This document shows, in pieces, positions 22,947-63,900 of a stretch of DNA of 64,000 nt; the stretch's first letter is position 1, and each line of letters opens with the position of its first letter. The position numbers and the translations under genes were made by a program. The DNA is from Perkinsus chesapeaki ATCC PRA-425 (Eukaryota; Protista; Perkinsozoa). The notes under the pieces are model-generated. The model was not told the origin of the DNA. It saw only the letters and a program-made list of their open reading frames with translations, and did no database searches. The stretch lies in the NCBI GenBank assembly GCA_013115145.1, contig JAAPAO010000052.1, positions 1 to 64,000 on the forward strand. The letters are read 5' to 3'.

Positions 22947-24596
22947 ATGGGTCCTGAGATGGTTTTCTTTTTCCTAGTGTTGCAGACGTCAGTGGTCGAG
23001 ACTTCACGTATCCGCTTCATTGTTAATGTAACAACGTATCTTGATCTCGGTATTAAAGACCACAGGAAGGATGCAACGCCTTGTTGGTTGTCATCGGCCA
23101 GGAATACAGAAGGCCTCACTTTACCTGGAATGGACTATAAGACGATATCAATGATTCAGGAAGTGACTGTGGAAGACGGTGCTCGTTATACTGTCACTGC
23201 AATGCCAAACTATCCATATCAATACTTTATGACTACAGAGACTTCAAATCATACCCGCCTGGAGCAGCTCTTCGGAAATGAGGCAGTTTTGGTCTCCACC
23301 GGCGGCCCTGAAGCCGACGTGGTTAATATGAAAGCCGATTGGTCCAAGGAGGCCCTGCTCGGCGATGGCTGGGTGTATGACACCAATGTAACATTTGACA
23401 ACCGCAACCTCAAGCGTTGGACCAAAACTGTTGAGGAGTTCGACAACGAGTCAAGCTTTAATCATTCTGCTTTGTGTCATTCTGGTGTTGGTCCAAATCG
23501 TTGGTATCTCCTAACCGATGAGAATGACCATCCAGTTAGGTCTGATGCAATCAACACTTGTAAAGAGCAGCTCCACCAAACGGCGGAGTTTAGCAAGTTT
23601 GAGGTCGGTGTGTCACTTGCTAGCTCTGCCTTCACCACTAAAGAAGATATCTTCTATCGCTATGATATCTCCCCGGCAAGAAAATTACGAGACTCAGCAG
23701 AGAGGTTAGCACCGCCTGTCGGTCGACTGTATTTAAACAAAGCAGTGCCACACCCAACCTCTGAGACGCATCTTGGTTATGTTAAAGGCTGGGAAGGGTC
23801 TGATTGGTTATCCAATAAGCAACTGCGTGGGGAGAAGAAAGACAGAATCAACTATTTCACAGTTGAAGAGGGCACGGCATCATACAGTTACTTCTATGCC
23901 GACCACCAGAGGCAGCTGGTTGAACTGGTCAAATTTATGTTTCCAACTACTTGCCGAGATAAGCGGACGGGTTATTCCTTTTGCTTGTACATAGAGGTGA
24001 CTGATGTTATGAGAGGGATGCGTGACTTATCAGTCAACGCTGGCTTCAGCATTGTCGATGTCACAAAACCGAATATAGAGGTTACGCTGAGGCTCTTCTT
24101 CCAGGGAACTTTTGATTCGGAGAACCACTTGTTCGACGTCATTCTTGGTCTACAGGCTCAAGGATGTGCTATTGTGTGGCAGCTCGGTGAAGGTATCGCA
24201 CTCTATGCTGCTGTTTGTATAGATGGTCGAGCCAGAGTGGAACATCCCGAATCACCGAACCGTGTGATCGACGTCCGCATAGCTATGTCATTGACTTTTG
24301 GAGTTTCCATGCCAGTAATCGGGGACTTGGCCGACATCACGTTGCAAGGTGCTCTCACCGCCACCATAGACAAGAACATATCTGCAACTGCTTCCATCAT
24401 GTTAATCAAGTCTTTGCTGGTGGCGGGTGTCGGACTGGGAATAAGTGTGACTGGAATGACTAGTAACCTTGACATGAAGACCTGGGACTGGAGTATCGGA
24501 TTCGACCTACTGTGTTGGGTGAATGTTCTTTTCTGGAAGCATACTTGGAGTAAGACCTATAAAATATTTGACACTGGTCCGATCCACATGCGATGA
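22947..24596 (+). CDS. Intronless 549-aa lineage-specific protein with hydrophobic N-terminus, copy 1
   Basis: 1650-bp ORF; near-identical paralog at 26483; signal-peptide-like MVFFFLVLQTSVV. Confidence 0.85.
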   Translation: MGPEMVFFFLVLQTSVVETSRIRFIVNVTTYLDLGIKDHRKDATPCWLSSARNTEGLTLPGMDYKTISMIQEVTVEDGARYTVTAMPNYPYQYFMTTETSNHTRLEQLFGNEAVLVSTGGPEADVVNMKADWSKEALLGDGWVYDTNVTFDNRNLKRWTKTVEEFDNESSFNHSALCHSGVGPNRWYLLTDENDHPVRSDAINTCKEQLHQTAEFSKFEVGVSLASSAFTTKEDIFYRYDISPARKLRDSAERLAPPVGRLYLNKAVPHPTSETHLGYVKGWEGSDWLSNKQLRGEKKDRINYFTVEEGTASYSYFYADHQRQLVELVKFMFPTTCRDKRTGYSFCLYIEVTDVMRGMRDLSVNAGFSIVDVTKPNIEVTLRLFFQGTFDSENHLFDVILGLQAQGCAIVWQLGEGIALYAAVCIDGRARVEHPESPNRVIDVRIAMSLTFGVSMPVIGDLADITLQGALTATIDKNISATASIMLIKSLLVAGVGLGISVTGMTSNLDMKTWDWSIGFDLLCWVNVLFWKHTWSKTYKIFDTGPIHMR

Positions 24597-26482: not shown

Positions 26483-28132
26483 ATGGGTTCTGAAATGATT
26501 TTCTTTTTCCTAGTGTTGCAGACGTCAGTGGTCGAGAGTTCACGTATTCGCTTCATTGTTAATGTAACAACGTATCTTGATCTCGGTATTAAAGACCACA
26601 GGAAGGATGCAACGCCTTGTTGGTTGTCATCGGCCAGGAATACAGAAGGCCTCACTTTACCTGGAATGGACTATAAGACGATATCAATGATTCAGGAAGT
26701 GACTGTGGAAGACGGTGCTCGTTATACTGTCACTGCAATGCCAAACTATCCATATCAATACTTTATGACTACAGAGACTTCAAATCATACCCGCCTGGAG
26801 CAGCTCTTCGGAAACGAGGCAATTTTAGTCTCCACCGGCGGCCCTGAAGCCGACGTGGTTAATATGAAAGCCGATTGGTCCAAGGAGGCCCTGCTCGGTG
26901 ATGGCTGGGTGTATGAGACCAATGTAACATTTGACAACCGCAACCTCAAGCGTTGGACCAAAACTGTTGAGGAGTTCGACAACGAGTCAGGCTTTAATCA
27001 TTCTGCTTTATGTCATTCTGGTGTTGGTCCAAATCGTTGGTATCTCCTAACCGATGAGAATGACCATCCAGTTAGGTCTGATGCAATCAACACTTGTAAA
27101 GAGCAGCTCCACCAAACGGCGGAGTTTAGCAAGTTTGAGGTCGGCGTGTCACTTGCTAGCTCTGCCTTCACCACTAAAGAAGATATCTTCTATCGCTATG
27201 ATATCTCCCCGGCAAGAAAATTACGAGACTCAGCAGAGAGGTTAGCACCGCCTGTCGGTCGACTGTATTTAAACAAAGCAGTGCCACACCCAACCTCTGA
27301 GACGCATCTTGGTTATGTTAAAGGCTGGGAAGGGTCTGATTGGTTATCCAATAGGCAACTGCGTGGGGAGAAGAAAGACAGGATCAACTATTTCACAGTT
27401 GAAGAGGGCACGGCATCCTACAGTTACTTCTATGCCGACCACCAGAGGCAACTGGTTGAACTGGTCAAATTTATGTTTCCAACTACTTGCCGAGATAAGC
27501 CGACGGGTTATTCCTTTTGCTTGTACATAGAGGTGACTGATGTTATACGAGGAATGCGTGACTTATCAGTGAACGCTGGCTTCAGCATTGTCGATGTCGC
27601 AAAACCGAATATAGAGGTTACGCTGAGGCTCTTCTTCCAGGGAGCTTTCGACTCGGAGAACCACTTGTTCGACCTCGTTCTTGGTCTACAGGCTCAAGGA
27701 TGTGCTATTGTGTGGCAGCTCGGTGAAGGTATCGCACTCTATGCTGCTGTTTGTATAGATGGTCGGGCCAGAGTGGAACATCCCGAATCACCGAACCGTG
27801 TGATCGACGTCCGCATAGCTATGTCATTGACTGTTGGAGTTTCCATGCCAGTAATCGGGGACTTGGCCGACATCACGTTGCAAGGTGCTCTCACCGCCAC
27901 CATAGACAAGAACATATCTGCAACTGCTTCCGTCATGTTAATCAAGTCTTTGCTGGTGGCGGGTGTCGGACTGGGAATAAGTGTGACTGGAATGACTAGT
28001 AACCTTGACATGAAGACCTGGGACTGGAGTATGGGATTCGACCTACTGTGTTGGGTGAATGTTCTTTTCTGGAAGCATACTTGGAGTAAGACCTATAAAA
28101 TATTCGACACTGGTCCGATCCACATGCGATGA
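26483..28132 (+). CDS. Intronless 549-aa lineage-specific protein, copy 2
   Basis: Same length as copy 1. I count 16 aa differences (about 97% identity). Confidence 0.85.
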   Translation: MGSEMIFFFLVLQTSVVESSRIRFIVNVTTYLDLGIKDHRKDATPCWLSSARNTEGLTLPGMDYKTISMIQEVTVEDGARYTVTAMPNYPYQYFMTTETSNHTRLEQLFGNEAILVSTGGPEADVVNMKADWSKEALLGDGWVYETNVTFDNRNLKRWTKTVEEFDNESGFNHSALCHSGVGPNRWYLLTDENDHPVRSDAINTCKEQLHQTAEFSKFEVGVSLASSAFTTKEDIFYRYDISPARKLRDSAERLAPPVGRLYLNKAVPHPTSETHLGYVKGWEGSDWLSNRQLRGEKKDRINYFTVEEGTASYSYFYADHQRQLVELVKFMFPTTCRDKPTGYSFCLYIEVTDVIRGMRDLSVNAGFSIVDVAKPNIEVTLRLFFQGAFDSENHLFDLVLGLQAQGCAIVWQLGEGIALYAAVCIDGRARVEHPESPNRVIDVRIAMSLTVGVSMPVIGDLADITLQGALTATIDKNISATASVMLIKSLLVAGVGLGISVTGMTSNLDMKTWDWSMGFDLLCWVNVLFWKHTWSKTYKIFDTGPIHMR

Positions 28133-48877: not shown

Positions 48878-51204
48878 TTAGTCACCACCCGAGGCCCCTG
48901 ACATTTGTAGTTTCATCATCTTCGATCGCCGCTCACCTGAATAACAATGGCAAAGCATAACATTACAAGCATTAGCTAACCTTCATGCTGCTGTTGCATC
49001 CGAGAATGCATCATCATATGCCTTTGTCGTTTGGCATCCTTTAATTTCATACCATGACAGCAAATGCTATTATTAAGCTGAACATCCTGGGGTTTGCAGG
49101 GGAGAGGGTGTTCAGTGGTTAAAAATGGATGCTCGAGACATTGAGGTGTCTGAATGGTACACGCTGTTGTCTACTTACATTAGTCACACTCACCCTAACC
49201 CGCTTCAATGGCTCCTTATGCAGCATTTGTAACACTAAGTCAGCTCCACCAATCGTTATGACGTTACGTAGGAGCTAATATAGGTACGCAAATGATATCA
49301 GACTTATAGCCGTACAGTGAGAAGTTTGCACTGTTGTTGATCGTCACCGGCAGATGCTCCAAGCTGCATCATACCTGGGGTGCTGGGGTCTGGTAAAGAT
49401 CGGATCTCTGGAGACGTTATCGGATCCTAGGAGAAGTGATATGAAACACTTACAAGACGGTACACTCACCAGTGGAGTTAACGTCTTAAATGCTGGATTG
49501 CCTGGGTCGCCCGTTGGCTCTGCGCTCGGGGATGTCGGGGAGTCTGGTCTAGGCGGGGCCTTACCCTGATAATAAAAATGACTAATACCCGTGTTGATCA
49601 TAACGCGTACCGTGAACTCGTTGTAGAGCGGTAAATCCTCCCAGAATGGTGGGAAAGGTTCCCCAAGATGCTCGACTATTAAGTTAAAAACCTACATTGA
49701 TGTATTATGAAATAACAACGCTATATTTGAACACCGACGCCCTTCTCTTTATCTGCTGCAAAAATGGGTTTCTGCAAGAGTAACTCAGCCAGTATGGCGC
49801 CAACTGACCATATATCCACTTCTGGGCCATACGTCGTACCTAATGATGATAGTATCAACTAATAGGTGGATAATAGGCTGTTACTTCCAAGTAGTAGCTC
49901 TGGCGGTCGATACCAGAGAGTGATGACTTTATTAGTGTAGATATGAGGTAGGCCATCTCCTGCGTTACTATCCTCACTAGAACACTGCCCTTTATCGGCC
50001 TAATCAAAAAAGGGTGAGTTCCTGTAAGAGGTGAAACACGTGTTACCTTCCGTTGGCGTTCCTCTACTCGCAAGACATCCTCCTCATCTGGGTCTGCTAC
50101 TGACATACACTCTCTTGCTAGACCAAAGTCAGCTAGTTTGAGAACTCCACTGAAGAAAGCCTATAAAGCATTGGACTCTTGGCAGCAGGGTTGCTACTTC
50201 CTATCCACTAGCAGATTGGCACACTTTAAATCTCTGTGTACTATACCATTTAGGTGGCAATAATCTAGGGCCCTCAGCGTCTGAATTATCATGCACTTTA
50301 CTTCTGGTATCTGATATACCGTAATAAAGGAAGATAACTCTACAGCTTACAGTTAGCATTCTTTTCCGTTCCTCTAGTATGCCGCTTAAATCATGTTGTG
50401 CAAACTCCTCCACCATATAGAGACTTCCTCTAAATAACAGGGCAGTCAATTAATGATAAGAAAAAATCACAAATGATATATTCCACTTCAAAGGAGCCAA
50501 CCAGTAGTACATATATACTGAGCTATATACTGTATGTGCATGATCTATTGTACGTCATCGCTGAGAATCATAATACTATGTATAGTACAGAGGCAAGGGT
50601 AATGCTCCCCCTTACCTATTCCTATTATGTGCTGTGGCTGCACTACTGCATAACCCATATAATCTAACAATATTGGGGCCATTAGCTAACTGACTTAGGA
50701 TACGTATCTCTCTCACTACCTAACAATGAGGCAGATGAATAATATACATCATAATAGTAGTAGCTTACAGATTTAGGTAGACCATCTTTACATACATCTC
50801 CTTCACCTAATCGTAACTTCTTTAAAGCAACAAGTATACCCGTTTTCTTATGGCGAGCCTTGAACACAGCACCATATGTACCTGTTAACTTTGAGTATTA
50901 ATTAATAATAAGATATCTTTACTATACCTTGACCAACTTGCTCGAGCTTCTCAAATCCAGATATACCATCCTTACATATCTCATCGGCTGTATAACCACT
51001 ACTGCCAGCGTTGGTATATGCATCCCCCCTGCATGATGTATTATCATGCTGTTGCTTATCGTGTGATGCTTACCTATTATCGTTATTCCAGTTAGTTGAT
51101 GAGGATGAAGACGAGGATTGAACGGTAAATTCCTGAGCATAGTAGGAGGTCCCAGCAGGGGGAGGCATCACTGTAGATGATGATGAAGATGAACGGCCAT
51201 ACAT
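48878..51204 (-). CDS. Cyclin-dependent kinase, CDK9/CDK12-like
   Basis: GTYGAVFKAR, VALKKL, cyclin helix DGLPKS|VVREIRIL, HRDLK, LKLADFGLAR, VTLWYRPPELLLG, VDIWSVG, HPFLTTEHPLPC. Confidence 0.92.
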
Positions 51205-51756: not shown

Positions 51757-54700
51757 TTACTCACAAGAGCTCATGTGTCGTCTAGCATACTGTCGTTGGT
51801 CGTTGAGGCCTCTATAAAGTCCTCGCCAACCACTATCTCCAACACCAGCATTATCCTCTGTTACATCATCTCTACGGTTACCATTCATACTACTGCTATT
51901 ATTATGATGGCTACCTCGGGACTTTGTACTTCCTCGTCGATCCCCACCACGACGAGACTTCCTTTTTATCTTTAAAGCGATAACTTCACGCGATAACCTT
52001 GTAGCCATAATAGCATGAAATTGCATAGCCGACTTTGGATGTTCATGTTCTAACCTCAATAAGCTATCTCTTGGTAATAATAATATGGTGGAATAAGAAT
52101 CAGCTACCATCGTATTCGAATGTGGGTATACACCATATACTGCACTATCACATAAGAAGTCACCAGACCCAACAACTCTTATACGATGGTTTTGACGTCT
52201 TGTTCTTGGTATATCCATAGCTGGACCAACCCTTGCTGCAGTAAGAGGGCTAAAGTCACCACCCATATGAGTATGTACCCTCACTGGCCCTGTGTATAAG
52301 CTTAATTCTCCAGAGACTATCAAATACGCTCCTTTTGCTATCTGTCCTTCTTCATATACAACATCACCAAGTGATACCTCCATACGTTGCATTTTGGATA
52401 GTAATGGTTCCACTAGGGAGTCCCCGAATATCTTTGCAACCAATCGGCGACATAAACTGTTTATCATAGTAGCTCTATCTTCTTCTGACTCATATACTGG
52501 TTGTTGCTCATACATATCATAAGATAGATTAGCAAGATCCTCATAGCTCTCTAGGCTCGGTAGACCGGAATAGTGACTGAGATTAACACTAGATAGGCCA
52601 AAGTTATCTGAGGCAAGAACTCCTTCGTGTTCATCCTCAGCACCAATCAGTGATGATGTGGATGTATGGGAGGAGCTTCTACCAGGGAGCATGCCAGACT
52701 CCAACATCTCAAACTGTGATAGTTTAGTAACAATACATTTATCTTCTACATATTCTAAAGCTGTATCAATATCATCAAACACCTTAGCTTGCTTAACAAA
52801 CTTTTTTACTTGATTCACTAAATTATCTCGGGTGAGATTTGCAATGACAAATCTAGCACCATCGGCCATGGGTAGAAGGCTAGGTATCTTATTAAGGGAG
52901 ACTAATGCACTAGAGTCGATAGAGGTTAGGGATTCAAAGTCCAAGACTAGATAACGAGTATTCTTAAAATCATTCGTATAACTAGTAAGGGCTTGAGAGA
53001 ATCTAGCACCAGAACCAAAGAATAGACTATTAATGATTGTCTTTGCGACAACTATAGTCTTATCTTGAAAGGAGTCATCAAGTATATTCATCTCTTCTAT
53101 TGTCCTAAAAGACATGTATCATAATAAGGAGAAGGAGGAAGGGTACGTGTTCATACCTAGCTTTGGTGCTCCTCACGTCAGTTTCAAATGTTACCACTGG
53201 AGCAGAGGATTCACGAAGTGTGAAATAACTAAAGATGGTATAATAAATGATAATATGTATAATGCCTCTTACATGCAGCATAAAGCTAGGCCTGCACAGA
53301 TAGCCCATACCACTCCTTTGAATAAATACGTAACCTAAGTCAGTTATGGATGCTAAGCCAATAGATATGATGTCGGCTGTTGTAAGGGGCCGGGAAAAGC
53401 ACGAGCACACCTTACTGCAATCAGTGCCACGACGAACTTCTCTGAACCATTAACTAGATGTCTGGGATCCCAAACCCCATCGAGTAGGTAACCAAAGGCT
53501 ATATGATACAGCATACCTGAATAACAGGAATGTTATTATGATATTCAACACCACCTTTAGAGCCCCCCATACCAGCAACCCATGGTTTAGGGACGAACTG
53601 GAGCAAGCTTTGACCAACAAGTAACCATACAAAACAGCTAACAGCATAAAAGAAGCCAGACCATCTTGTAGTGCCACCCCCAGCATCTTGATTAATACGG
53701 GTATTGGAATAGGACACATAAGAAGCGGAACCTGAATGGTTACTAGCAGGAAAGGTAAGGATGAATTAGCAGTTGTTGTTACCTCCCATAAGCCCACATA
53801 CAGTATTTGAGACAGCAGCACGCTCTATCTCAGACTTCATGTTTAATTCTACATGGGATGCAGCTTCCAATGGGACCTGAAAGGGAGGGGTTATAGTATT
53901 GGAGCATAGAGTGAAGACGATGATGTACTTACAACTGCACCTGCACTCATATCAACAAAGTATACAACAAACATAGAAAAGATAGCCACTGCATACTCAG
54001 AGAATAGGTAGCCGTAATCAAAGGTGAGAGGGTTACCATAGTCTTCAACAAGAGCAGTTAATGGTTGGTAAGGGAGAGAAGCAAACAACCATTTATTATC
54101 ACGTGCTTCACTAAGTGATAAACCTAGTATACCGCAGATAAGACCATAGAGTAGAAAGAGTTCAATTATGAATATACAAGGTAGTATAAGAGGGTTAGGG
54201 AACCATCGACTACCGAATCTATTCATAAGACCGCATAGACAACCAGCTATAGATTGAAGTAAAAGTGTTTCATCCGTCATAGTATGACTGAAATCAGCAA
54301 ATGTTTTAATGGTGAATCCAACAGCAGTATCATTAGATGATTTACACATAGCTAAACCAACAGCCGTGAAGAAGCCATAGATGACTGGTTGAGGGAAACC
54401 AGACTTAATAGTATTAAGATAGTCTCTACCAATAAGTACTATGACAAATAGGAATAATCCAAATGCTAGAGTAGTTGCACCAAATATTGTTAGTACTTGC
54501 GATACAGCTAATTTAGCATTGCTACCAGCAGCTTCAACATAGGCAGCTGTGATGGTGGATAGGAATGGTAAACCAACACTTGAAGGGGCTGCTATTAAAC
54601 CCTTTATCTTATGATTACAATGAAATAACTGACTAACCATAGCTGATATTAATATAGAGTTCTGGCATACACCAATCCATGGTGCAATAAGAGGATCAGA

Positions 54701-55543: not shown

Positions 55544-57717
55544 TTACAATTGTAAGGTCGGACCATCATTACCATAGCCACCAGTCTCCTCCTCCTCATA
55601 ATCATCAACATCTGTTATTATAGGTGGTTCCTGTTCATTTAATGTCTCACGTCCCTCCTTCTGCTTCCTCTTTTCATGGAACTCCTCTCGAAGTCTTTGC
55701 TTCTCATCCTTCTCATTCGATCTCTTTCCCTCTTCCCTCGTCTGGGACTTAGCCTTTGGCTGTTTAGGTGGTCGGATGGCTGTATAAGGAGGAGGAGTAT
55801 AACGATGGTAGCGGAGTAGTAGCTTACATATAGATGGTAGTTGAAGCATTTCACGCATATTAGGGGAGTTACCAGCATCACACTCACTTAAGAATGATAC
55901 TGAAATATAACATGTTACGAGTTGTTGAGGGGTCCCGCATGGGGGGGGCACTCCTTCAAGCTCTTGCTCACCTGCATCATAGTCCCTTTCTAGCTCCTTA
56001 CCCTTACTTGTTAAAGGTAATACTTCAACCATACCTAGTATAATACTATGCCTTATAATAGAGCAGAATACATACCTTTAGTTAAGCCATCTAAGTCAAC
56101 CTTCCTATCGGGTGTGTTAAGGCACATAAAGGACAGGTTCTTCTTCTTCTTATTAGACTGTTGCTGATTATCATCCCCTTCTCTTTTAGCGGCCACCACT
56201 GCTGGGTCTAGTTTCAACTGTAAGGTGGAGGATGTTAACTATGACCTAGTTGCTGCTGCTGCTGTTTAATACCCTATATTTAGCAGTATCAAGTGCCACA
56301 ACACGCATCCCTCTATGAGATTTCATAGCTTCTCTAACAACCTTTTTAACAGCATCGGGGAACTTGGATCGATACCTTTGAAGAATAAGAAGAAATAACT
56401 GTATGACTGTAAGAGGTGGTAGTGTCATCACCCTATAAGCAAGCATTTCTGTCGACTAAGGCACATACTGTCTAATTGCTTAGCGTTCTTAGCAAACCTA
56501 AAATACACCAAGATAGTAGCAAAGGTAGTCTCCATTTCACTACGCCTACCTTACAATAGGTCTTGTATTGGCTTTAGTGAACTCAACTACAGTCTGAGAG
56601 TTAGCCATAGAGTTGGCGTTCAACTGGATAGGACGATCACCATTAGCAACTACGAATGCTGGCATGAGGTTGTTAGAGAACTTATATCTATAAGGTAAAT
56701 GAGTGTAATGGTAGTAGTAGTACGGCGTAATGTAGTACTTCTGATAGATGCTTTTGCCTGTATCAGGTAAAGGCTGATGACAGTCCATAGTATAGGTTGA
56801 TGCTATACCACGAAGGTCTCTATCAGCTTCTTTTAATACCTATATCAATAATACTATCGGGATAATCGTATTATGCCGGTGGCGACTGCCAATATCTTAC
56901 AGGAGGTATCTTATTGACCTTGAGGCTTTTATCAAAACAGTAGACGAGAGCAGGCTCTCCAGATAGCAACACCTTAGTAATGTGATGCGTTGTTGAGAGT
57001 GATGTGATTAACTGCTGCCTACCTGTCTTAAGGCTGTACTATCCTGGATATCGATATGCTTGAAACCAGCAGCGAAAAAGTCGTAAATTGTGAATACCTA
57101 TTAGGTAGAATAAGTAACAGGTGGAGCAGGATGTAGTGGACTTACAGTAGATAGGGCGCCAGCACTGAACAGTGATAAAAATAGTAAGCCTATGGATGCT
57201 TTCTTCCATGTAAACTAAAAAACATTAAGTCGATATGAGTTATCCTCCTCCTCCTTCTCAGTAAGGTTAATACCCCTTCAGAATCTCTGGATCGTTTAGT
57301 AGATGCAGCCTTCTGTGCAGCAGCTAATGCCCTCTCTTGCTTCCTGATAATAAACCATACCAACGAAAATACCGTTAACAATCATACTCATCAACATTGG
57401 CATAATACACCTTCCCTCCTCCTCCTCCATTAGCTTGCTGCTGCTTACGATGGCGTGGTTGATTATGATGATGTTTGGTATCCTCGTTAGTAGCACCTTC
57501 GGCTTTGAAGGACTCGAAGAGCGCTTTCTAAAAAACGCGCGAGTCAATATTATGAATTAAGAATAGTAGTAAGAATCTTCACCACCTTATCACTTCCAAC
57601 TGCATATCTATCTACGTCATCATCCCCAAAAAGCTTAGCCATATCCTCCTTCTTAGGGGCATCACCACCGACACCATCACCGGCACCATCTGCTTTATTA
57701 CGAGATCGAGGGGCCAT
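55544..57717 (-). CDS. Multi-exon hypothetical protein with a probable TM segment, possible thioredoxin-like folds and a charged C-terminus
   Basis: MAPRSRNK start, GT-AG-flanked exons, ends ...GPTLQL*. No diagnostic motif recognised. Confidence 0.55.
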
Positions 57718-57984
57718 ATTATAATAGACCCAAAACTAAGTATGGTAATGGTTAGATTAGGTAATAAGAATACAACAGAGCACTATGGTTGGAGAAACTC
57801 TATTTAGAAAGTCACATTAGGTAGTAGACTAGGATAAATCAAGTACTGATAAGAATCAGTGTTAATATCCTATTCATTATCATCATCATTATTACAATTA
57901 CCACATAGCAATAGTAATATGAGAGGGTACGTTATCATACAAGATGAAGAAGAAGAACAGCAGTAATAAAGAAGAGTATCATCA

Positions 57985-60900
57985 TTATACTAATAATGCA
58001 TCATGGACAAATGTACGGTATGATACTATATCGCTAAGTAAACCATCCACCTCAGCCTCAACACCAGCAGCAGCATCATCATCATCATCATCGGTTGTAT
58101 GGTAGCCCTGCTGCTCTATGGTAGAATGAGGCACTGCCGGCGAGGGCATCATCATCATCCAGCTAAGGCATTATAATATAACTGTTATTAAAGTATATCT
58201 TACCTTAAATTAAGATGCAAATAGCGTTGATGGAATCTATTAATATAATCAGATAAGGTAAGGTATTGGGATATACGCTCCTGATAATAAAATATATAGG
58301 AAAGAGTAAACAACAAAGTAGTAGCAATAATAATAATAGTACAGCATCGAAGGTTAGTATTAATGTAGCTGGATTCTTAAGTAGCAATGATACTGTATCT
58401 TGTAATGCTCTAAAATCACCTAATAATGGAGGTTTATGATAATAACGAGTGCCTAATAGAGTAACACCTTCACCCCCATCATGGTCCATATCATCAACCT
58501 TCCTTCTAACATATGATAGTATATCCAATACAGTTCCTCTAGGATCTCCTCTATTAAGACTCAGAGGTACCTACATCATCATTATTATTATTATGAGTAT
58601 AATAAGTGTTATTGTTGTTGTATCATCCCCATACCTGGCATATATGGCAGAATACTCTAGCATCACCATGATACTGGCTTGGGGTTCTAGACAAGTCATC
58701 TAAAGTGGGGCTCTTGTTATGGGGGTCATTACGGGTAATGGTACTATTATACCGTGGATGATGATGCTCTAACTGAATAAGATAATGAGTAAAATATATT
58801 ACACATGATGATGATGATGACATACGTGGAAAGGTGTATCATACATACGAACGGTGCTGGGTGGCCTCTCAGTAGCGCAAGATGTCGGCGGTGATGGTGC
58901 TCTGTTAGTAGTCGTAGGGATAGGCAATCTCCTTATCGAGTCAAGTATAGACTGAGGATCCCTAAAGTATAAGGCTGCTGCTGTTGCTGTTGCTTCTTAT
59001 GTAGCACTAAGAGTAACTCTTACCTTAATAATGGATGACATGCTGTAGTCGCTAATGGTTCTCTATAGCATGGTCGACGTCTGACCATACGAGAGAGGTA
59101 GTCCTAATAAGAAACAGAGGATAGGAGGGAGAGTGTACTAGGCAGCAGCAGCAGGCTACTAAGAATAGTGGATCAAGATGACGACCAAATAGCTGCTTGC
59201 AAGTAGTGGTGGTCTGGTGAGCATCGGCTGTTGCTGTTGCTGGATCAGGTAGCCTGTCCTCCCATTGTTTGGGGCGTACACCAGTAATAGCAAATAATAT
59301 AACAGCACCAAGTCCCCATACATCAACCTATTAGTAGGTAATAATTATATTATGATAATAAGGTATATGGTTATTATTACTAAAGACCAGTCTATATCAC
59401 TCAATAGGGATTCAATACTATGTACATCATAATCATCCTCATCACTTAACATCTGGAGTATATGCGCCACCTGAAAGGGTATAATGGTAAATGGCAGTAG
59501 GAGCAGAGTATAGGGTATTACTACCTCTGGTGGATACCACCCTTCTTTAGCATGCCCCTCTGACAGTATCTCCTTAGCTTTCTTCTTGACTATCATCCTC
59601 ATTGTGGTATCATCATATTGCCTTCCACCTCCTTGGCCTGCTGCTGTTGTAGTATGACCCTCAGTCAGCTCGCTGCTGCTTGTCGAGCATGGTCTTATTT
59701 TATTAATTATATCCAACAGCTTAACTTTACCAATCTGACACATATTAACAGGCATACCAAAGCAGCAGCAGCAGCAGCAGCAGCTCGTAGACGTACATGA
59801 TCGCCAATTCTAAAAATGACTCTAGATCCCGATGGTCGTGATCCTGATGGTAGATCGACTAATACATTATTAGCTGATAATCGGCCATGATATATATTAA
59901 AGAACTGATAACAATAATACAAGTAAGGATGTTGTTATTGACGTATAACATGAGGCGTACATGCATACGCTGTAGGCCTGCGGTCAAGTCTCTAGCTAAT
60001 ATCTGTACCATATCACCAGATAGTGCAGTACTAGATGGATCTGATAATATTAATAATAATAATATGATGAAGGGTAATGTAAGTAGTAGTACCAGTAGTA
60101 TCTATAGATGCACCAAAGCCTGCTAACATCTCATTCAATGACATATCACATTCTGTTATAGTAACCACAATCTTACCAGTCGACTAAGAGAGCAGGCGTA
60201 ATGCTATATTTGTAGTGCTAGTATTGGTGGATAATGATTAATACCTCCTCATATATATGAGATATATTAACAATATTAGTATGTGGTGATCGGGCCAATA
60301 ATGCTAATTCACGGACTATCTGTCGTATACCCCCTACTCTTGACAAACATCTATTATGGTATATCTGAAGAAGAAGAAACCTTTAAGGATGATGATGATG
60401 ACGATGCTAGTTACTGGCTCCTCGAAGGGTCCACTTGTTGAAGGTGATGATGTTGATGATGCTTTATTATTAGATAATAGTATCTATCACTATTACTTAT
60501 ATCATTATTGTTATATATTACTACTACTACCTGATCTGGGAATACTCTTTGTAGGTTATGTAGGAATGCAGTAACATCTCTCTGTTGCTCCTCCCCTTCA
60601 TCCTTTATCGGTATTATCTTAGCCAGGCATTGCTTACCCTGAGTATAACATAGTCGTACGCATAGTCAGTACATTATCATACGTCATCATCATCAATCGA
60701 CTTGTTGCCATTTGTAGACAGCCTTCCTCCTCCTCTTTTTGTTCTTGTATCCTTCTCTTTAGCTCTATGCACACCCTTCGCTCCATGGGCTATATTAGAG
60801 TATACCATCACTCTACCATCGCCCTAATACCCCATCATATTCTTTACCCAGTAGTAGTATTACCATAATATCCCATACTCCTTCTCCTTGTTGTTCCTCT

Positions 60901-63900
60901 GTCTCGCTAAGCTCCCTACTAGATACCCCACTGGCCTCATTTGTAGTACTGGCTATAGACGGTGACACCAATGCCATACCCCTCCTATCTCTAGCCGTTG
61001 CTCCTGCTACTGCCCCCGACTGCTGCTGCTGCTGCTGTCTGACCTAGAATATAATGATCTAACAAACGAGCATTGAGAATGATGGAGAGAGACCCCTATA
61101 ATAGTAGTTGAATACATCCTGTTACTGTTTCCCATTATTAACTGTTTCAGTATACACTGTAGCTGCTATGTCATCGACTATACTATTAATACTGTCATCT
61201 CCACTACTACCACCATCCTCATCATCATCATTAACAGCAAATGATGGTTCTCCTGCTACTAGCCCTCCTGATAGCTCTTGTTGATGCTGTTGTTGAGCTT
61301 GCCTATGTTGTGCACCACTACGGAGGAATGGTGCTAGACATTGACGTAGCTCATCTTGACCTAAGATAGTGTATATAATAATAGTAAGGTATATTAGTAA
61401 TACTACTTAATGGTGATGCTCTTACTTCCTCTGGGCAATGGGCAAATGGACAGTAGTATCTACTTATATACTATGTACTGTATTATTATAATAATATTAT
61501 ACCTAGTACAGCATACATCCTCACATAGGAGAGCTTTATATACCCATGGATGGAATAATACCTCCTCTTCAGAATGTGATAATCGGCAACTACGCCCAAG
61601 TGGACTGAAGGACTATAGGTATAAGGTATTGTTATATACAATAGTTTCTCACCATCTACATCTCATCCTTCTAGGCGGATGATGATGTGTAGTGTTATTA
61701 TTATCAGTTGGATCAGTATCCATCATTATATAACACAATGCTTGGGAATAATGGTCACAGAGTCTCGGCTCATAACTATCAACAACAACAATACTATAAC
61801 ACGTGCTATTATTATATAGTATATCATTATTACCGATACTTTAATGGAGACCTCCTCCTCCATTCTATATTATGACTATATTGGCATCTACCTATACCAT
61901 ACTTACTGCTATATTATATTTATTATTATTACTAGAGAATAGGCATTCCCCAGTAGCAGCAAACCTCTCACAGGTACTGGTACGGAACTTAGCAATATCA
62001 TCATTTGATAGTATCGCTGGTAAAGCCATTATTATTATAACTCTCGGTGGCGTGTTACATTATAATAATACTACTAATAACACAACACTCATACCTTTAT
62101 CATGTATACAACAACCCCAACCTCTATATCATAATCATGGTAAGATGGTGATAATAACATCAACTGCTGCTACTACCCCGAACACCACCACCACCTTGTT
62201 GTTGACCACGTAGTTGTTCTATAGCCTTCTCAGCTTTCTCCCGATATGCCTATACTACTACAGTATATTATTGTATTAGAATGTTGTTGTTACCTTTTCC
62301 TCCTTTAATGCTGTCTCTAGTGGTACTATAGCACGCTTGATCTCATCTTGTACTAACCTCTCTACATCAGCTGATGTCATGGATAAACATGATGATGGTG
62401 AACCCAATACTGATGATGACTTTGCTCTATGACTTGATGATGATGATGATAAAGTAGCAGTATAAGATGTACCCCTACTAGATGCAGTACTACTATGACA
62501 AGAATAACAACCTAATAAAAGTCATGTTAAATACAACCATGCATACCTTACTTGAGCAGATGTCTCGAGACCCAGTAAGATACGAACAAGATGATGCTAG
62601 ACTACTTGCTGATGATGGATAATTATAAGATGATGATGATGACGCTGTACTGGTATGATCGGTTACTGTATTCCCTATATATAACAACAATACTACTACA
62701 GTAATCAAATATACCAAGTATTACCTCTACGTGGAGTAGTTGTTATTGTTTTTATTGGCCTTGGTGGTGGTAATGATGATATACGTCTATTAGACGGTAT
62801 ATTCCTCTTCCTTATACCATTAGACAGCACAGCCTATTATTATATTACCATACCTTATACCTTTATTATTACCTTATCCCCTCCTTGCTGTTGTTTTCTT
62901 TTCATTGACTCTATTGCTGCAGCCACTCTTGAGGCTGCTATGGATGATCTTTTAGATGCTATCTTTTCCCATTGTATACGTTGCTGCCAGAATTGATGAT
63001 CTTCATTAGGACGTCTCATATCTATTATTACTAATAACTATTCCCACTACTACTACTATCACCACCACTCCCATCTAACCCAAGTATTAGGTATAACATG
63101 ATGAAACAGCAACAATAACAACCGTAGTACTGGATAATGCAGTAATGAAGCAGTTAATGGAGGCGATATAACACTAATAGTATTATCATCGATGTGAGCG
63201 TTGTTGCTGTTGTTGCCTTGTTGTTCTCGGTGATCCTTCCCTCGCTCCCCCTCCTTGCGGCTGCTTTCTTCTCCTACTATCTTTTCTATTACGTCTAGGT
63301 GATAATGTTGTATTATCAATATATGGCGTACCATAATAATATTCACTATCTGAGCAGTATGTAGTATCATCATCATCATGCTCTATATACCTAAGTAGCT
63401 ACAGTAATAACAACCCTACTACTTCCTATCCCCCCCTACTCTTGTGGCACTATCCATGTAACATTAGTATCCCGTTCAATAGATGGACTCCTCCTATCTG
63501 ATGATGATGATGCCCCAGACCTATTACTCTATATCACCCGCAACCAACATTATTATATATTACTACCCATAACGATAATGTCGTTGTTGTTGTTGTTGCT
63601 GTTTAGCAGGACTAGTACTATATAGATTACCATAGGTATTATCACTGTCTGGTGGTGGGGGTGGAGGGGGTGGTGGTTGCTGCTGCTGTTGGCCTGGTGT
63701 ATATATCTAATAATCCTATCTTATACCCCGTTATATTATATATTACTACTACCCCTGTACCATATCCTCCTCCTAATAGCTGTGGTTGTTGACCTATACC
63801 CATCCCTCGACCCTAACCCACCATAACAATAGTAATGATCATCCGACCTACTACTACTACCTCCCCTGGTGGTTGATGCTGTCTTCTAGGCTCAAGTAAC

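Follow-up and report, generated by a model that had tools for sequence, protein, structure and literature searches.

The window, a 64,000-nucleotide (nt) stretch covering positions 1 to 64,000 of contig JAAPAO010000052.1 of Perkinsus chesapeaki ATCC PRA-425 (assembly GCA_013115145.1), carries a gene of many small exons on its minus strand between about 58 and 61 kilobases (kb). The original prediction for this locus described a pseudokinase joined to a KEN-like domain, both with substituted catalytic residues, and all of the motif strings it quoted are present on this strand. To our knowledge, the kinase-KEN module has two known uses, IRE1 and RNase L, and each of these proteins cuts RNA with its KEN domain. 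On balance, we lean toward reading the P. chesapeaki gene as a real gene, conserved in Perkinsus, that would encode a cytosolic relative of IRE1 and RNase L in which both enzyme centers are degenerate.

Thirteen exons were modeled from alphaC to the stop codon, each with an AG acceptor and a GT donor, and the reading frame is open through all of them. The introns measure 41-64 nt. Introns of this size are real here, since a public contig just upstream directly displays introns of 43 nt and 46 nt. Comparisons were made exon by exon or with the Perkinsus olseni ortholog as a stand-in. The parts of the gene, from the N-lobe to the stop codon, are as follows.

60414..61043, minus strand: N-lobe region (glycine-rich loop, or G-loop, and beta1-beta3), which holds LAKII (~60625) and rival candidates for the beta3 lysine at ~60765 and ~60757 in other frames
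60245..60364, minus strand: exon with alphaC (Glu kept, V-R-E) and beta4, placed by Pfam Pkinase, PDB kinases, hhalign, and its AG/GT borders
60093..60183, minus strand: beta5 and hinge exon with T-E-C-x-x-S-L, placed by hhalign (columns 160-175) and by its order with the adjoining exons
59961..60040, minus strand: alphaE exon, hhalign columns 193-203, with the spacing to the catalytic loop as in IRE1 and no gap
59797..59904, minus strand: catalytic-loop exon, reading H-G-R-L-S-A-N-N, which also carries the DFG-equivalent Asp (R-I-G-D-H), hhalign columns 206-236
59525..59734, minus strand: activation-segment exon, starting with I-G-K-V-K-L-L, followed by a low-complexity insert and ending in G-W-Y-P-P-E, hhalign columns 257-267
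59381..59470, minus strand: predicted 30-codon exon from the APE motif to alphaF, modeled from splice signals and IRE1-matching spacing only
59160..59327, minus strand: alphaF exon (D-V-W-G-L-G), hhalign columns 306-321, where the 260-amino-acid (aa) P. olseni ortholog begins
59024..59103, minus strand: alphaH-alphaI exon with the kinase end H-P-L-L, hhalign columns 357-382, conserved in P. olseni
58826..58961, minus strand: KEN-like tail exon 1, with a conserved start followed by a low-complexity insert, its splicing fixed by P. olseni proteins
58635..58772, minus strand: tail exon 2, variable and His-rich, with R-N-D-P-H (58733) and a conserved G-D-x-R-V-F block, from the P. olseni comparison
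58343..58570, minus strand: tail exon 3, whose helix G-T-V-L-D-I-L-S-Y-V-R-R-K-V-D-D-M is, by hhalign, the candidate counterpart of the RNase helix in IRE1
58204..58280, minus strand: tail exon 4, with Y-I-N-R-F (IRE1 Y-F-T-x-R-F-P), the top hhalign match, in the expected order in both species and not significant
57985..58162, minus strand: last exon, with an acidic low-complexity tail and the stop codon, its S-W-M-M-M start conserved in P. olseni

The kinase part of the gene was compared with natural IRE1 sequences. A degenerate DNA pattern for the KEN helix was scanned on metagenome contigs and gave 110 natural IRE1 loci, among which yeast IRE1 evidently occurs, with residue numbering that agrees with the literature. 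The IRE1 profile is an alignment of 32 diverse natural kinase-KEN segments. Against this profile, hhalign places the alphaC exon on columns 131-146 with an expectation value (E) of 1.4e-3 (5e-4 in a second run), the beta5/hinge exon on columns 160-175 (E 0.033), the alphaE exon on columns 193-203 (E 0.23), and the catalytic-loop exon on columns 206-236 (E 2.2e-5, probability 76%). The activation-segment exon follows on columns 257-267 (E 0.03), the alphaF exon on columns 306-321 (E 5.6e-6), the alphaH-I exon on columns 357-382 (E 1.8e-3), and tail exon 3 on columns 445-457 (E 0.066). The top matches of these eight exons are strictly ascending (columns 131, 160, 193, 206, 257, 306, 357, and 445), an arrangement that chance would give in one of 40320 orderings. 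Because of this order, the segment from alphaC to alphaI is, judged by its sequence, a protein kinase fold whose elements come in the IRE1 sequence of subdomains.

Details of the fold also recall IRE1. The spacing from alphaE to the catalytic loop is identical to that of IRE1 and free of gaps, and an insert stands between the catalytic loop and the DFG motif, as in the IRE1 consensus. IRE1-typical motifs include T-E-C-x-x-S-L for E-L-C-x-x-S-L, I-G-K-V-K-L-L for F-G-L-C-K-K-L, G-W-Y-P-P-E for G-W-x-A-P-E, and the kinase end H-P-L-L for H-P-F-F(-W). The profile comparison covered IRE1 alone among kinase families and is not a test of whether the gene is closest to IRE1. Among the 110 IRE1 loci, there is none with a CCCH finger and none that stands out as close to the P. 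chesapeaki gene. Searched with single exons, Pfam returns one marginal match, below its cut-off (Pkinase positions 43-69 on the alphaC exon, E 0.089), and PDB phmmer returns nothing useful beyond an alignment of the same exon to kinases (E 0.16). A plain hmmsearch with the IRE1 model leaves the exons of this gene unscored and matches a neighboring kinase instead.

The kinase-like domain is very probably a pseudokinase, because both the catalytic Asp and the loop Lys are absent from H-G-R-L-S-A-N-N. This motif aligns residue for residue with H-R-D-[IL]-K-P-x-N, which upholds the original claim that HGR-LSANN replaces HRD-LKxxN: Arg takes the place of the catalytic Asp and Ser that of the loop Lys. 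Only the His, the Leu, and the Mg-binding Asn of the loop are kept. An out-of-frame H-R-D at 59834 was rejected, as it is out of order and has no kinase context. The alphaC Glu is kept, again as predicted (V-R-E), and R-E-L falls on r-E-i in three independent alignments, to Pfam, to PDB kinases, and to the IRE1 profile. The DFG motif had been read as D-H-V, which is correct for the first two residues. R-I-G-D aligns with l-I-S-D and thus retains the DFG Asp, with the Phe and Gly replaced or shifted. A GT donor directly follows D-H; the V is the first intron codon (gta), and reading on meets a stop. The predicted spliced equivalent is D-H-I-G, in which the DFG glycine is possibly displaced by one residue.

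The N-lobe does not bear out the claim that LAKII holds the beta3 Lys. The interval 60.4-61.0 kb contains nothing that aligns to the G-loop or beta3 columns of the IRE1 profile, three rival candidate lysines lie in three frames of this interval when it is inspected by eye, and IRE1 spacing would put the beta3 position at the beginning of the alphaC exon, which lacks a Lys there. The failed alignment counts against our overall reading, as does its consequence for ligand binding: nucleotide binding is possible, with the alphaC Glu, the loop Asn, and the DFG Asp kept, but the G-loop and the beta3 Lys are not located. The original prediction of a nucleotide-binding scaffold of the IRE1/RNase L type therefore divides into two parts. 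A non-phosphorylating scaffold is still the best reading, since the catalytic base is absent and the gene is under selection (see below), while nucleotide binding stays at the level of the possible.

After H-P-L-L, the protein continues in a helical tail that is probably a KEN (HEPN) domain, much diverged and interrupted by inserts; we consider its descent from KEN fairly likely. A two-species profile of the C-terminal half matches the IRE1 profile with a probability of 94% (E 1.5e-7), and the alignment runs through H-P-L-L into the first KEN helix. The ESM Atlas model of the 260-aa P. olseni ortholog has a predicted template-modeling score (pTM) of 0.55, and its four nearest structures are all IRE1/PF06479 clusters. 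Their template-modeling scores (TM) by query are 0.39-0.50 (0.46-0.50 for the three named IRE1 clusters), from alignments of 130-177 residues spanning residues 1-245; in the same search, plain kinases reach 0.23-0.29. In the Atlas feature search, a PF06479 cluster shares 170 of 256 features with the ortholog at 0.90, and PF06479 is also at the top, at 0.87, when the tail is used alone.

In the best surviving alternative, the protein is a divergent pseudokinase whose helical tail is specific to the lineage and has no KEN ancestry, and the likeness of V-R-R-K-V-D-D-M to the RNase helix would be a chance match of an amphipathic helix. We regard this account as unlikely, but several results weigh against a KEN origin. 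In no sequence or profile search does the tail match KEN significantly: the spliced P. olseni ortholog gets no match in Pfam; PF06479 and our own KEN profile find no match, tail included, in a six-frame search of the 41.7-megabase assembly (41.7 Mb); and PDB phmmer and hmmsearch find no KEN for the tail, only His-tag artefacts. The hhalign match of the tail to our KEN profile (E 0.08) falls on a segment other than the RNase-like helix. When the tail by itself is compared by structure in the Atlas, no KEN is recovered, and an AlphaFold model of the ortholog from a five-row alignment is all helices and too poor to use, with a predicted local distance difference test score (pLDDT) of 39. Tail exon 3 shares its best-matching KEN helix with other segments of the gene, since tail exon 1 (E 0.045) and the 30-codon exon of the model (E 0.075) fit that helix equally well. 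The last-exon match, that of tail exon 4 to Y-F-T-x-R-F-P, is at chance level, with 86 of 180 shuffles reaching its score. What speaks against a tail of other origin is that the kinase is IRE1-like in detail, down to E-L-C-x-x-S-L, G-W-x-A-P-E, and H-P-F-F at its end, that each of the first four whole-protein matches in the Atlas is a cluster bearing KEN, with a TM roughly double the values of plain kinases, and that PF06479 clusters top the feature search. A KEN nature of the tail is probable, with moderate structural and language-model support and no significant sequence support.

If the tail is KEN-derived, it likely has no canonical RNase activity. Yeast Ire1 uses H1061 and Y1043 as its acid/base pair, with N1057 and R1056 holding the scissile phosphate (PMC3149027). 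R-x4-6-H is the HEPN endoRNase motif (PMC3710099), and the IRE1 residues give R-x4-H. The original prediction placed RRKVDDM at this motif, and the string does lie in tail exon 3 and in its best alignment to the KEN profile, where G-T-V-L-D-I-L-S-Y-V-R-R-K falls on s-V-r-D-L-L-R-a-i-R-N-K (E 0.016, with 3 of 180 shuffles scoring as high); it is the identification of the tail as KEN that lacks significant sequence support. The same KEN-helix alignment is also at the top for P. olseni. Accordingly aligned, R-N-K-x-H-H-[YF] of IRE1 corresponds to R-R-K-V-D-D-M in P. chesapeaki and to K-R-Q/E-A-N-D-Y in P. olseni, so the predicted absence of an Asn/His pair is found in both species. The basic residue is kept (Arg, or Lys in P. 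olseni), but neither species has the Asn, and both have Asp in the place of the catalytic His. No Tyr occurs seven residues before the helix Asp in either species. IRE1-type cleavage would not be expected, since R-x4-H has become [RK]-x4-D and the Asn and the upstream Tyr are absent as well. A caveat against this mapping is that three segments of the gene match the same KEN helix (E 0.016-0.075); the score is therefore not specific, and the residue assignments rest mainly on position and order.

The best-conserved block of the tail follows the RNase-like helix (tail exon 3, 58343-58570). Between the two lies Y-H-[KR] (58400-58440, minus strand; P. olseni residues ~210-216), which is kept in both species amid a variable stretch. 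An in-frame R-N-D-P-H (58733; R-A-D-Y-H-H in P. olseni) occurs in the His-rich variable stretch of tail exon 2 and matches the RNK helix with E 0.45. M-D-H-D, which had been put forward as a shifted RNase site, was rejected because it is not conserved in P. olseni.

A KEN/HEPN tail that still cuts RNA could in principle use a rearranged site, made of the conserved Asp and a His from Y-H-[KR] or from R-x-D-x-H in exon 58772-58635. This arrangement would suit the conservation of [RK]-x4-D in both species and the presence in both of the downstream Y-H-[KR] and the upstream R-x-D-x-H, and the HEPN survey notes a family in which Asp stands at the His position and a conserved His is found at another site (PMC3710099). 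However, loss of H1061 costs IRE1 more than five orders of magnitude in rate (PMC3149027), the Asn and Tyr are absent as well, the candidate histidines lie in variable or low-complexity stretches, and R-N-D-P-H resembles the RNK helix only at the E given above. A rearranged but active RNase is accordingly improbable, and a domain that has lost IRE1-type cleavage is the reading we retain.

The only relatives found for the gene are partial P. olseni proteins. An exhaustive protein search with tail exon 3 (58343-58570, minus strand) found one true ortholog, P. olseni KAF4725654.1; two repeat proteins in the same search are noise and were discarded as false positives. KAF4725654.1 has a P. olseni cluster mate of 260 aa that starts at the alphaF exon. 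A word-index search with the 260-aa ortholog, whose matches are solely P. olseni fragments, recovered a third partial protein, and KAF4725654.1, KAF4734119.1, and this third protein fix the splicing of the C-terminal half. The P. olseni gene model on JABANN010001606.1 runs from the tail into the next gene, which consists of an acidic region and then a membrane span. The same next-gene blocks occur at 57040-57720 (minus strand) in the window, but here a stop codon at 57985-57987 separates them from the tail, so the P. olseni model of the third protein is probably a merge of two genes.

Exon borders and motifs are common to P. chesapeaki and two independent P. olseni assemblies, and the frame is open in both species. 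Over 173 aligned codons between P. chesapeaki and the P. olseni contig, in alignable blocks only, the proportion of replacement changes (pN) is 0.275 and that of silent changes (pS) is 0.80, which is saturated. The two key exons are single copy in the P. chesapeaki genome and have no paralogs. The excess of silent changes, together with the shared borders and open frames, argues for purifying selection on the C-terminal half within Perkinsus and not for a pseudogene. Two further results count against our reading of the gene as a whole: no public RNA run or contig covers the kinase or KEN exons, and no ortholog of the kinase region was found by a word-index protein search with the activation-segment piece. 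A word-index search with a KEN-like exon piece likewise gave no match. Of the substitutions, those at the RNase-like site have a counterpart in P. olseni.

A decaying pseudogene, or odd motifs produced by errors in the assembly or gene model, could account for the missing transcripts of the kinase and KEN exons and for N-terminal exons that resist modeling; it is very improbable given a frame that stays open over 13 modeled exons, all canonically spliced, the recurrence of exon borders and motifs in two independent P. olseni assemblies, and replacement changes far below saturated silent changes. Equally remote is an atypical active kinase that takes its catalytic base from another position, which would fit the retained alphaC Glu, loop Asn, and DFG Asp but not the replacement of two catalytic-loop residues, Asp and Lys, the lack of a recognizable glycine-rich loop, or the lack of any evident conserved substitute acid.

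Upstream of the N-lobe lies a Cys-rich stretch that may be part of the same protein.

61324..61592, minus strand: CCCH-like zinc-finger exons, the candidate upstream part of the gene, joined by a 193-nt public contig that links 61592-61499, 61455-61405, and 61358-61324

The public contig skips introns at 61456-61498 (43 nt) and 61359-61404 (46 nt), both GT..AG on the minus strand. Its identity to the window is 90-95%, which suggests that it comes from another strain or allele. The joined stretch is Cys-rich and ends in C-P-F-A-H, and half of a zf-CCCH Pfam domain (PF00642) is matched at 61895-62059 (E 0.06). An unbroken C-x8-C-x5-C-x3-H finger is absent from every frame.

A degenerate kinase-KEN protein would act as a non-enzymatic scaffold or adaptor. 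By analogy with IRE1 and RNase L, it would perhaps dimerize back-to-back, and it may bind RNA through its tail and through the CCCH-type fingers encoded just upstream. Likeness to IRE1 (Ire1p/ERN1) consists of a kinase in order from alphaC to alphaI, the IRE1-typical motifs, the insert before DFG, and a helical domain directly after the kinase. Unlike IRE1, the P. chesapeaki protein is without the catalytic-loop Asp and Lys and has no counterparts of N1057, H1061, and Y1043, and its tail contains long inserts and is not recognized by PF06479. In place of a lumenal sensor, CCCH-like fingers lie upstream. No lumenal sensor or membrane span was noticed at 61-64 kb, where no search was aimed at them, and the gene may begin outside the window.

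RNase L combines a pseudokinase scaffold that binds ATP with a KEN domain that is active (PMC4718504). It would resemble the P. chesapeaki protein, as read here, in being soluble, in having a kinase-like domain that does not transfer phosphate before a KEN-type domain, and in combining these with a different N-terminal module for ligand or RNA binding. RNase L, however, keeps a canonical nucleotide pocket, an active R-x4-H, and ankyrin repeats that bind 2-5A (PMC4718504), whereas the RNase signature is gone in the P. chesapeaki protein. Pfam found no ankyrin match in ten upstream pieces, a search at the exon level and of low sensitivity. In the HEPN survey, KEN domains are fused to kinases, with "CCCH in some," and the motif is conserved in ~95% of members; HEPN domains without the motif are read as non-catalytic RNA binders (PMC3710099). 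Perkinsus is absent from the main text of that survey, which describes no member with both the kinase and the KEN degenerate (PMC3710099). Our literature search found no substantive link between Perkinsus and IRE1.

Other genes of the window are distinct from the kinase-KEN gene. A second kinase gene occupies 49100-51100 (minus strand); its exon at 50197-50346, with an intact H-R-D-type loop, scores 21 bits against the IRE1 model, and its remaining small matches are out of order. A 452-aa open reading frame (ORF) at 51757-53115 (minus strand) contains a STAS domain and a cyclic-nucleotide-binding domain. On the plus strand, 22947-24596 and 26483-28132 are tandem intron-free ORFs of 549 aa with full-length DUF6740 (PF20525; E ~4e-104). 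This pair looks like a recent tandem duplication in a family of unknown function.

The rest of the assembly yielded neither a canonical KEN motif nor a canonical KEN domain, a weak negative given the short exons. A scan of the assembly for the R-N-K-x-H-H-Y pattern gave as many matches as the control, none of them meaningful. A 21-mer coding for R-N-K-S-H-Y-Y occurs on four contigs (C854:56938, C2834:125, C3226:43966, and C3416:2393) and was set aside as probably a dispersed repeat, because it has four copies and the one examined follows a stop codon and has no KEN context. A more far-reaching proposal, which we hold to be rather unlikely, is that Perkinsus is without any catalytically competent IRE1. 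Its only kinase-KEN descendant would then be a cytosolic CCCH-pseudokinase-pseudoKEN protein, either a scaffold that purely binds RNA or an enzyme that cuts it at a rebuilt [RK]-x4-D site, and the IRE1/PERK-type lumenal sensor would have moved to another output. If true, this would represent a rewired unfolded-protein response in an alveolate lineage.

Fusions of kinase, KEN, and CCCH and KEN domains without the motif are already on record (PMC3710099), and a member degenerate in both domains is an incremental advance. If our reading is true, the kinase-KEN module would be maintained here purely as a scaffold or RNA binder, and the gene would provide a natural test of which functions (dimerization, nucleotide sensing, or RNA recognition) outlast catalysis. 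The finding also bears on how endoplasmic reticulum stress is handled in Perkinsus, a major parasite of shellfish.

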